Part shown: piece by piece, positions 6,818 through 8,586 of the stretch | Layout of the letters: each line of letters begins with the position of its first letter | Position numbering within the stretch: the first letter of the stretch is position 1 | NCBI RefSeq assembly: GCF_000400465.1 | Contig: NW_008806276.1 | Location: 450,001-482,000 of the forward strand | From: Wallemia ichthyophaga EXF-994 | Taxonomy: Eukaryota > Fungi > Basidiomycota | DNA: 32,000 bases | Direction of reading: 5' to 3' | The notes under the pieces: model-generated | Databases searched by the model: none | What the model saw: the letters and a program-made list of their open reading frames with translations, nothing else | What the model was told of the DNA's origin: nothing | Made by a program: the position numbers and the translations under genes

Positions 6818-6902
6818 TTTTGTAAGTGATTGTACTAGAGAGAGAAAGAAGGCGCGAAGAATGAAGAGGTTGAAGGCCGTTTAGAGTGATTTTATTATAA
6901 AT

Positions 6903-6988
6903 ACGCGATGATTTACTAGAAGCAGCACATATACCACCTACTCTCCACTTGATTTCAAACCAATTTTCATTACGCTTCGAATACGCGT
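6903..6988. promoter_or_regulatory. MCB-like elements upstream of the NAP-family gene
   Basis: ACGCGA at 6903-6908 and ACGCGT at 6983-6988, about 85 and 165 bp upstream of the ATG. Short motif, function not shown. Confidence 0.3.
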
Positions 6989-7298
6989 CATAGAACAGAG
7001 TGCCGTGAGGGTTGTGCGATTGAGGGCTATGAGTGATTGATTGTGCTATATCGTTTATGACTTAGTTCATATCACTACAATATTAAATCCCTTTCACACA
7101 AAGATCGTGTTAGAAAATATTCAGCAAAACTCAACATATCCATAACACATCCAACAGACATAAACACAAACACACGTCACTCTATCAACACACTCCAGTC
7201 TCTTCACTTGGAACGAAATGACATCAATGACTTGGAAAATTTGTTAATCTTGATGTTGTCAGCTGGTCTTGAAGCCAGAACAACGCAAAGCGTAGCTC

Positions 7299-7924
7299 TT
7301 AAGATCTTGGCTTCTCCTGTAGCATAAAGTCAGTGAAGCCCTTGAGACAAAAATAGTATAAACTCACCTTGATACCTCTCCTGTGATTGCAGTGGTTAGT
7401 ATTCGTCAGTCACGCAAGCCTAATAGTAAATTACCATCTGCAGTAAGGTTAGTAGGTTTTCTGAATGAATTATTGTAACTTGCAATGCTGAAATACCAAC
7501 CTGAGCAAAACGTTAGCACCATTTTTCAGTGAAAGCACTTAACACTCACACCGGAGACCTTAACGACCTTGAAACGGACACCAGGACAATCACCCCTGGC
7601 TTTACCTTTCTTACCGAAACCAGAGATAAGTACCTCGTCGTTCTCGTCGACAAAGTTGAGACCACCATCGTTTGGTACGAAAGCAGTAACCTTCTTGCCG
7701 TTCTTGATGAGCTGAACACGCACACACTTTCTGATAGCACTGTTTGGCTGCTTAGCCTCAACACCGACCTTCTCAAGGACAATTCCCTTTGCGTGAGAGG
7801 AACCACCGGTTGGCGAGGTCTTCCAGAAGTTACCAAGGGCCTTCTTGTTGTACTGCAAGTCAGCCCAACGGTTGTCTCTTCTGATGGTCTTGAGCTTGCG
7901 TGCTGTTTGAAGTCCGCGTGGCAT
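7299..7924 (-). CDS. RPS23: 40S ribosomal protein uS12 (S23); exons 7550-7924, 7484-7500, 7435-7437, 7368-7380, 7299-7316
   Basis: [25 protein letters not shown] signature. The C-terminus VGISALWRGIKEKPRS is recovered with four short introns. Confidence 0.96.
7435..7437 (-). other. 3-nt microexon (ATG) of RPS23, preceded by GC-AG intron 7438-7483
   Basis: Upstream intron GCAAGT...ACTAAC-CTTACTGCAG and downstream intron GTAATT...ACTAAC...CACAG. Only this combination yields L-W in the conserved ALWxxxKEKPRS tail. Confidence 0.8.
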
Positions 7925-8586
7925 TGTACTCTACTTGGTCGCTGAAGAGAAGTTGCGACGCTCATCAGAAATTCTCATCACCAAATTTTAAAATTTCGAA
8001 TAGCGTAAAATTGTGCCTAAATGGTGTAAATTGGAATACGTCGATTTCTTTGTTTCGCTTCTTTTCCTTCTTCTATTTCCCAATTTGGCTTCTGGTCTGC
8101 TTTCGCCTTGGCTCTGTGCCGTGTTTTCAACGGCGGAAGGTTGATAACTTGCATGAATTAACACGTCCATTATATATCAACTTGTTCGTACGCCATCAAT
8201 ATCTGCTAATTATCTTTTCTGCCTAGACATAGCTTTGATTTCTAGTATGTAATCCTACTATAACATCTGAAGCAGCTTCAGATACGCATAGAGCTAGGGC
8301 TCCTCTCAAAACACATCCTTGTACACCCCATACACACGCCAGTCACAAGAAATGATATATTTGCTCATGTCTAAATGAGAAGAGAAATAGATAAAAATGC
8401 GATAGAATAATTGTAGTGTGAGCATTGATAGTAGTGAGAGGGTTTAGGGTGGTGGACGTTGGCATAAGCATCATTTTTCATTAGCATCGACAAGTGGTAT
8501 CAAGATTAGCACTAAGAATGGCATCACCTGCCAAACCTGCGACCTCACTCGAACCACTCTCGAAGCACCTAAAACGCTGACGCATC

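Follow-up and report, generated by a model that had tools for sequence, protein, structure and literature searches.

A predicted three-nucleotide exon behind a GC-AG intron at the 3' end of the RPS23 gene of Wallemia ichthyophaga

Long-read sequencing of the basidiomycete Coprinopsis cinerea has documented 27 exons of 3 nt, 57 of 2 nt and 13 of 1 nt, and the authors of that work describe fungal microexons as barely studied (PMC12230235). In plants, microexons no longer than 15 nt are pervasively mis-annotated (PMC8831610). Introns bounded by GC and AG make up about 1% of fungal introns, as compared with 98.7% for GT-AG (PMC7072748). In the stwintrons of filamentous fungi two closely adjoining spliceosomal introns are probably removed sequentially (PMC6616335, PMC5587772).

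The 3' part of the gene for ribosomal protein uS12 (RPS23) of the salt-loving fungus W. ichthyophaga, as modeled here, has features in common with each of these systems. Like the C. cinerea cases, it contains a basidiomycete internal exon in the range of 1–3 nt whose omission breaks or alters the protein and which earlier annotation had missed (PMC12230235). The C. cinerea exons are supported by transcripts, whereas the RPS23 microexon is read from DNA; and while the C. cinerea genome is intron-rich, with microexons enriched in P450s among others, the RPS23 microexon lies in a ribosomal protein gene of a compact 9.6-Mb genome and follows immediately after a GC-AG intron. As in plants, the exon would be a very short constitutive coding exon that specifies a conserved residue and is systematically overlooked by pipelines (PMC8831610), although plant microexons are conserved across species and the one in RPS23 is confined to a single Wallemia species among those sampled. 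The intron upstream has the features of U2-type GC-AG introns, namely GC followed by AAGT at positions +3 to +6, a 3' AG, and interchange of GC and GT at homologous sites, but here GC and GT alternate within a single species, and only 3 nt separate the end of the intron from the next donor. Introns 2 and 3 of RPS23 were also considered as a stwintron, an arrangement in which one intron interrupts the splice signal of the other and nothing is left in the mRNA; this classification was rejected because each of the two introns carries a full set of signals and 3 nt would have to be left in the mRNA. The RPS23 tail represents no new mechanism, exons of 3 nt or less and GC-AG introns being already documented. 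What is distinctive is the combination of a ribosomal protein gene, a compact genome, a donor polymorphic for GC and GT, a correctable annotation error, and a lineage-restricted origin.

Exon structure and uniqueness of the splice path

The DNA analyzed (the window) is a stretch of 32,000 nt from W. ichthyophaga EXF-994. RPS23 lies on the minus strand, with its start ATG at 7924-7922 and an in-frame TAG three codons upstream of that ATG. The uninterrupted open reading frame from the ATG is 375 nt long and ends ...FKVVKVSG; if it is continued without splicing, the frame closes at VSVKCFH* just past KVSG. The original prediction placed four introns and exons of 17, 3, 13 and 18 nt beyond this point, and all of its coordinates and sequences proved correct on the minus strand. 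The resulting structure is as follows.

7550..7924, minus strand: exon 1, codons 1-125, ending ...KVSG, from translation; 0/375 sites variable in 4 strains
7501..7549, minus strand: intron 1, 49 nt, GTGAGT...GCTAAC...CTCAG, phase 0 after Gly125; 3/49 sites variable
7484..7500, minus strand: exon 2, 17 nt, GTTGGTATTTCAGCATT, coding for V G I S A L-, from the unique path; one S/A polymorphism
7438..7483, minus strand: intron 2, 46 nt, GC-AG, GCAAGT...TACTAAC...CTGCAG, phase 2 in Leu131
7435..7437, minus strand: exon 3, the 3-nt microexon ATG, from the unique path; invariant in 4 strains
7381..7434, minus strand: intron 3, 54 nt, GTAATT...TACTAAC...CACAG, phase 2 in Trp132; 1/54 sites variable
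7368..7380, minus strand: exon 4, 13 nt, GAGAGGTATCAAG, coding for -W R G I K; same as uninterrupted W. hederae DNA
7317..7367, minus strand: intron 4, 51 nt, GTGAGT...CACTGAC...TACAG, phase 0 between Lys136 and Glu137
7299..7316, minus strand: exon 5, 18 nt including TAA, GAGAAGCCAAGATCTTAA, coding for E K P R S and the stop, from the unique path

Joining of these exons yields a coding sequence of 426 nt and a protein of 141 aa with the C-terminus VGISALWRGIKEKPRS*. The microexon supplies the third base of Leu131 (TT/A) and the first two bases of Trp132 (TG/G). The coordinates bear out the earlier statement that 200 of the 251 nt between 7299 and 7549 are intron. Each of the four introns has the characteristics of short fungal U2-type introns, i.e., a GT or GC donor, a branch-like CTRAY motif near the 3' end, a YAG acceptor and an appropriate length, and the acceptor trinucleotide is CAG in all four. 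Their lengths of 46–54 nt compare with the 40–58 nt obtained for probable introns in other parts of the window, a survey by an ORF-joining heuristic that is noisy and was used solely for size range and donor diversity; the mean intron length reported for W. ichthyophaga is 61 bp (PMC3849046). Intron 2 has GC at +1/+2, AAGT at +3 to +6 and a 3' AG, as expected of the GC-AG class, and the microexon is bounded as CAG/ATG/GTAATT, such that leaving out ATG removes an invariant aromatic residue.

All GT/GC-AG routes downstream of Gly125 with intron lengths of 35–150 nt were enumerated. A 16-residue tail ending EKPRS* is reached by 54 paths and one ending KEKPRS* by 22, whereas the tail VG..AL[WF]...KEKPRS* is reached by exactly one, which is the predicted four-intron model; removal of the four introns along this unique path restores the orthologous frame and length exactly. 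With donors limited to GT, no path in the window sequence leads to VG..AL[WF]...KEKPRS*, and the GCAAGT donor is therefore required, consistent with the earlier claim that the second intron can start only there. The same GT-only search does recover the four-intron model in strain GCA_004918895.1. A strict regular expression for short introns matches 10 times in the window as compared with 5.4 times expected from simulated sequence. Splice motifs alone are thus weak statistics that do not discriminate, and the strength of the case is comparative rather than motif-based. The great majority of the 99 homologue tails compared have the form V[GSA]L.AL[WFY]KEKKEKPRS, and the position of Trp132 is occupied by W, F or Y in all 99. 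From this conserved protein tail we infer that the microexon is included in RPS23 mRNA.

Orthologues, deposited models and strain variation

Both family profiles score the 141-aa model above their curated cut-offs: Pfam PF00164 gives 151.8 bits (cut-off 22.3) with profile positions 3-109 of 110 covered, and TIGR00982 (NCBIfam uS12_E_A) gives 178.7 bits (cut-off 140.2) with positions 1-138 of 139 covered. Residues 2-141 of the spliced model align end to end with Chaetomium uS12 (PDB 5oql chain x, residues 6-145), and the model is of full length, including the tail V[GS]..AL[WFY]...KEKPRS. Exons 1 and 2 together (131 residues) are 100% identical to one set of W. ichthyophaga GenBank proteins and exon 1 (125 residues) is 100% identical to the other set; the DNA is 98% identical to contigs of three W. 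ichthyophaga strains.

The other Wallemia species provide controls resembling cDNA. In W. hederae, the sister species of W. ichthyophaga (PMC6738226), RPS23 (TIA91278.1) encodes 141 aa and is syntenic, and its tail GTTGGTTTGGCCGCTCTCTGGAGAGGTATCAAGGAGAAGCCACGTTCTTAA is encoded in uninterrupted DNA (GTT GGT TTG GCC GCT CTC TGG AGA GGT ATC AAG GAG AAG CCA CGT TCT TAA, translated as VGLAALWRGIKEKPRS). RPS23 of the outgroup W. mellicola likewise encodes 141 aa, and past its Gly125 intron the sequence VGLMALWRGIKEKPRS is uninterrupted. The spliced W. ichthyophaga tail corresponds codon for codon to the uninterrupted DNA of both species, with equal length and, as compared with W. hederae, 14 of 16 residues identical, and the equivalent of Trp132 is W in both congeners. 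The three genes are orthologous and syntenic, are all 141 codons long and have the tail ...ALWRGIKEKPRS in common; those of W. hederae and W. mellicola differ in being without introns at Leu131, Trp132 and Lys136. The uninterrupted tails of the congeners may be taken to stand in for cDNA, and on this comparison the structural model is strongly supported. The uS12 tail that was predicted to be restored by splicing thus finds counterparts of the same length in uninterrupted congener DNA, and only the four-intron model gives end-to-end profile coverage.

The unusually dense interruptions in the last 51 coding bases might be taken for those of a decaying pseudogene, with a functional RPS23 elsewhere in the genome. 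No second W. ichthyophaga RPS23 is present among the homologues found, however, and the order of genes at the locus (mitochondrial carrier, eIF4E, RPS23, NAP, Prp19) is common to W. ichthyophaga, W. hederae and W. mellicola. No site in exon 1 varies among the four strains, splice signals bound every interruption, and removal of the interruptions restores the exact frame and length, all of which leaves a pseudogene with a negligible probability. The locus is very probably the single-copy uS12/RPS23 gene of W. ichthyophaga, with the last 16 codons assembled by ordinary U2-type splicing of four short introns.

The original prediction anticipated that pipelines would mis-call this region, and all GenBank models of RPS23 for W. 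ichthyophaga do have a wrong tail, with 188 or 166 aa instead of 141. In the reference EXF-994 (EOR03732.1) and most resequenced strains, the 188-aa model reads through intron 2 and terminates within the 3' flank in a wrong frame. In one strain (TIB65293.1, 166 aa) VSG is joined out of frame to exon 4, skipping exons 2 and 3. The open reading frame of the Logan assembly is a plain unspliced read-through. That the deposited models are correct, and that W. ichthyophaga uS12 has a longer, divergent C-terminus of 188 or 166 aa, is favored by their deposition for EXF-994 and for resequenced strains alike. Nevertheless, these models lose the universally conserved tail to an out-of-frame run into the 3' flank, the two lengths conflict on near-identical DNA, and both models score lower than the 141-aa model without reaching the ends of the profiles (3-98 and 3-101 for PF00164, 1-129 and 1-123 for TIGR00982). 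MAKER annotation of the population genomes drew on the EXF-994 proteome as evidence (PMC6738226), which accounts for the spread of the error. It is extremely unlikely that either deposited form is the true protein. A collection of 15 billion proteins contains neither the 141-aa sequence as modeled nor its S/A variant nor a microexon-skipped form of 140 aa, and when the spliced 46-aa C-terminus was used as a query, the best match had 83% identity. These searches yielded no RNA-derived protein with the spliced tail, a point against the four-intron model. The reference and all resequenced genomes carry a wrong version of an essential, universally conserved ribosomal protein, an error that affects orthologue sets, phylogenomic alignments, and counts of domain gain and loss.

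Variation within the species was assessed by aligning the window with three further W. ichthyophaga sequences, one from a Logan assembly and two from GenBank strains. Variable sites number 13 of 200 in the predicted introns as compared with 2 of 426 in the exons (Fisher p=1.5e-5). The two exonic differences are an S/A polymorphism in exon 2 (TCA/GCA at 7491) and GAG/GAA at 7314 in exon 5, the latter synonymous solely in the frame of the four-intron model. Among the strains the in-frame stop in intron 1 changes from TGA to TTA and the branch motif of intron 4 from CACTGAC to CACTCAC; since both vary, the predicted introns behave as introns and not as conserved elements. Strain variation supports the intron assignment, while four strains are too few to establish purifying selection on the microexon or on its flanking AG and GT. 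At position +2 of the intron 2 donor (window position 7482), C is found in the window and in the sequences L001 and L002, and T, giving GTAAGT, in GCA_004918895.1. The GC donor is present on each of the two haplotype backgrounds and the GT donor on just one of them, suggesting that GC is probably the older allele at intron 2.

Proposed order of splicing and possible alternatives to it

All four introns would be removed constitutively by the major spliceosome, with recognition probably by intron definition, each intron of ~50 nt being treated as one unit. Introns 2 and 3 are only 3 nt apart, so that the 3-nt exon ATG must be kept between them. Both have off-consensus donors (GCAAGT and GTAATT) that may be offset by their perfect TACTAAC branch sites. 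Only ~14 nt separate the intron 2 branch point from the intron 3 donor, so that splicing complexes could probably not occupy both introns at once. Removal of introns 2 and 3 would then probably be sequential, with the microexon fused first to one of its neighbors. The string predicted across the spliced tail junctions is TTTCAGCATT-ATG-GAGAGGTATCAAG-GAGAAGCC, that predicted if the microexon is skipped is CAGCATT-GAGAGGTAT, and that predicted if intron 2 is retained is CAGCATTGCAAGTTAC.

Mostly skipping the microexon would amount to treating introns 2 and 3 together with ATG as one GC-AG intron of 103 nt (GCAAGT...CACAG), giving a protein of 140 aa without Trp132 that ends …VGISALRGIKEKPRS. The outer splice sites are usable, a 3-nt exon lacks any exon-definition signal, and the product is in frame, the last point having been predicted correctly from the sequence. 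On the other hand, the residue lost is the one that is aromatic in every homologue tail and W in both other Wallemia species, and an intron of 103 nt would be roughly double the length usual at this locus. In addition, a second TACTAAC lies 10 nt upstream of the internal CAG and a GT donor follows after 3 nt, which is the signature of two introns. A genome-wide analysis with TopHat found one exon-skipping event in W. ichthyophaga, although the program is blind to a 3-nt exon (PMC3849046). Given the invariant aromatic residue and the complete second set of signals, skipping is expected to be minor at most, and it is quite unlikely to be the main outcome.

Ribosomal-protein genes of other fungi are known to autoregulate through their introns, and this precedent lends some plausibility to the suggestion, made in the original prediction, that the microexon marks a point of splicing fidelity or autoregulation, with its inclusion or the retention of an intron tuned by uS12, growth or salt. 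An mRNA that kept any one of these introns would have an altered tail or a stop, and intron retention is the commonest class of alternative splicing in W. ichthyophaga (PMC3849046). An autoregulatory element would be expected to have a conserved structure or sequence common to relatives, and none was found: a scan of 6900-8300 gave no Rfam match, the fold of the 262-nt region is no better than that of shuffled sequences (z=-1.13), and introns vary freely among strains, including the branch motif of intron 4 and the in-frame stop of intron 1. Neither W. hederae nor W. mellicola has the arrangement, and it is therefore not a conserved regulatory device. The suggestion is left unsupported by these results, and a regulatory function here is very unlikely. 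As a system for splicing itself, the RPS23 tail offers a compact test case in which an intron-definition spliceosome faces a 3-nt exon behind a GC donor, with natural controls at hand in a conspecific strain having the GT donor and in two congeners without the introns flanking the microexon.

Intron positions and origin of the microexon

Intron positions were mapped onto Wallemia residue numbering, with the following result.

W. ichthyophaga RPS23: Gly125 phase 0, Leu131 phase 2, Trp132 phase 2, Lys136 phase 0
W. hederae RPS23: Lys58 phase 0 only
W. mellicola RPS23: Gly87 phase 2, Gly125 phase 1
Irpex lacteus RPS23: positions include Lys136 phase 0
Cutaneotrichosporon RPS23: positions include Lys136 phase 2

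The survey covered 80 metagenome loci and named fungi; 22 loci are without a parsable tail, and most are intronless in the tail. An intron at Lys136 in phase 0 also occurs in four metagenome loci. GenBank models of Lactarius, Collybiopsis, Athelia, Mrakia and Russula end …WKEKKVR… or similarly, and such ...KEKKVR... tails in models from Agaricomycotina point to read-through of a donor at the position of intron 4. This position is old and widespread in basidiomycetes, and intron 4 was most likely inherited and then lost from W. hederae and W. mellicola. The W. mellicola intron at Gly125 is 49 nt long, the same length as intron 1, and its site is 2 nt upstream. Introns at Leu131 or Trp132 are found in none of the ~69 other loci with a parsable tail, suggesting that introns 2 and 3 arose within the Wallemia lineage. 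The comparison with related basidiomycetes that had been proposed along with the gene model therefore separates an intron position that is found elsewhere, Lys136 phase 0, from two that are seen in W. ichthyophaga only. Two further sequences were considered in this context: L071 was rejected as a Wallemia, being GC-rich and from an unrelated basidiomycete, and RPS23 is absent from the eIF4E-linked contig L006.

One explanation of this distribution is that, following its split from W. hederae, the W. ichthyophaga lineage gained introns 2 and 3 at sites separated by 3 nt, in which case the microexon would be young; we give this slightly less than an even chance. Alternatively, introns 2 and 3 may be older within Wallemia and may have disappeared from both congeners through 3'-biased loss. 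Intron loss has demonstrably been active in this gene, as intron 4, which looks ancestral, is gone from both congeners. In terms of events, recent gain requires two insertions 3 nt apart, and an earlier gain requires that W. hederae and W. mellicola each underwent a single 3'-biased loss, losses that intron 4 needs anyway.

Introns 2 and 3 have in common the 3' stretch TACTAACC(TT)ACTGCA, which includes the branch consensus (shuffle p about 0.002). Pairwise local alignments of the four introns reveal no other notable similarity. A resemblance of the junction of intron 1 and exon 2 to that of intron 2, microexon and intron 3 was examined and rejected (p=0.71). None of the four introns recurs elsewhere in the window, and there is no trace there of duplication or of an introner-like element.

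The arrangement around the microexon has the appearance of a by-product that is tolerated as introns turn over, not of a regulatory device. Should recent gain in the W. ichthyophaga lineage be the correct explanation, the locus would represent a rare dated case of microexon birth by double intron gain, with the GC donor still segregating against GT. No RPS23 intron position recurs identically among the three Wallemia species, and with no position in common across a coding sequence of 426 nt, Wallemia may be a suitable genus for studies of intron turnover.

Ends of RPS23 models and the unspliced frame

Five GenBank RPS23 models, from Lactarius, Russula, Collybiopsis, Athelia, and Mrakia (homologous proteins P0015, P0018, P0029, P0031, and P0083), are missing the final EKPRS and continue past …WKEKK as …VR… or …KQGRK…. 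They apparently overlook the short final intron located at Lys|Glu, so this kind of mis-annotation is widespread in Agaricomycotina.

The deposited RPS23 model of Sympodiomycopsis kandeliae (locus L011:742-1036) requires a 6-nt exon (L011:865-870) flanked by 123- and 166-nt introns, in the codons that correspond to Val79 and Ala81. A second basidiomycete RPS23 thus contains a tiny exon, in a position unrelated to that of the W. ichthyophaga microexon.

Within intron 1 of W. ichthyophaga, the stop codon TGA at window 7526-7528 (minus strand) closes the unspliced VSVKCFH* frame. Two of the four strains compared (W. ichthyophaga sequences L001 and L003) carry TTA here. In them the unspliced RPS23 open reading frame extends to 172 aa, and a Logan assembly lists this unspliced product among its called proteins (P0003).

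Regions flanking RPS23

A possible 5'-UTR intron of 40 nt lies upstream of the gene:

Window 7942-7981, minus strand: putative intron GTGATG...TTCTGATGA...TCTTCAG, with its 3' end 17 nt upstream of the ATG.

Acceptor-like motifs are also found close upstream of the RPS23 ATG in W. hederae (…cttctctcag|cgacttcatcATG) and in W. mellicola (…gctaacgcacttcag|aaccaacATG). RPS23 of other basidiomycetes has a phase-1 intron after Met-Gly. The Wallemia proteins begin with MPRGL and are without this N-terminal extension.

Downstream, nucleosome assembly protein (NAP) and Prp19 are annotated as a single fused product in W. hederae (L004:4077-6474, 755 aa or more) and W. mellicola (L005:7622-8913, 1226 aa), but they are two separate genes in W. 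ichthyophaga; the fused products probably reflect the merging of two gene models.

Intron positions in Wallemia RPS23

Within the 426 nt of RPS23, no identical intron position is common to W. ichthyophaga, its sister species W. hederae, and the outgroup W. mellicola.

Intron positions in RPS23 of three Wallemia species
Window 7299-7924, minus strand, W. ichthyophaga: introns at G125 (phase 0), L131, W132, and K136
L004:3001-3474, W. hederae: intron at K58
L005:5375-5894, W. mellicola: introns at G87 and G125 (phase 1)

Intron sliding is a candidate explanation for one pair: intron 1 of W. ichthyophaga (window 7501-7549), which follows Gly125 in phase 0, and the phase-1 intron within Gly125 of W. 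mellicola (L005:5795-5843). Both are 49 nt long and their positions differ by 2 nt, but their sequences are otherwise dissimilar.

The Leu131 codon, TT|A (window 7484-7500 and 7435), is split by intron 2. No other leucine codon of W. ichthyophaga RPS23 is TTA, those of exon 1 being CTT, CTC, and TTG, and the equivalent of Leu131 is CTC in both relatives. The junction bases may have been shaped by splicing or an insertion event rather than by codon preference.

The adjoining eIF4E gene spans 849 nt in W. ichthyophaga (282 aa), 874 nt in W. hederae (274 aa), and 913 nt in W. mellicola (274 aa). Together with the differing RPS23 intron positions, these unequal spans suggest rapid intron turnover across the genus Wallemia.
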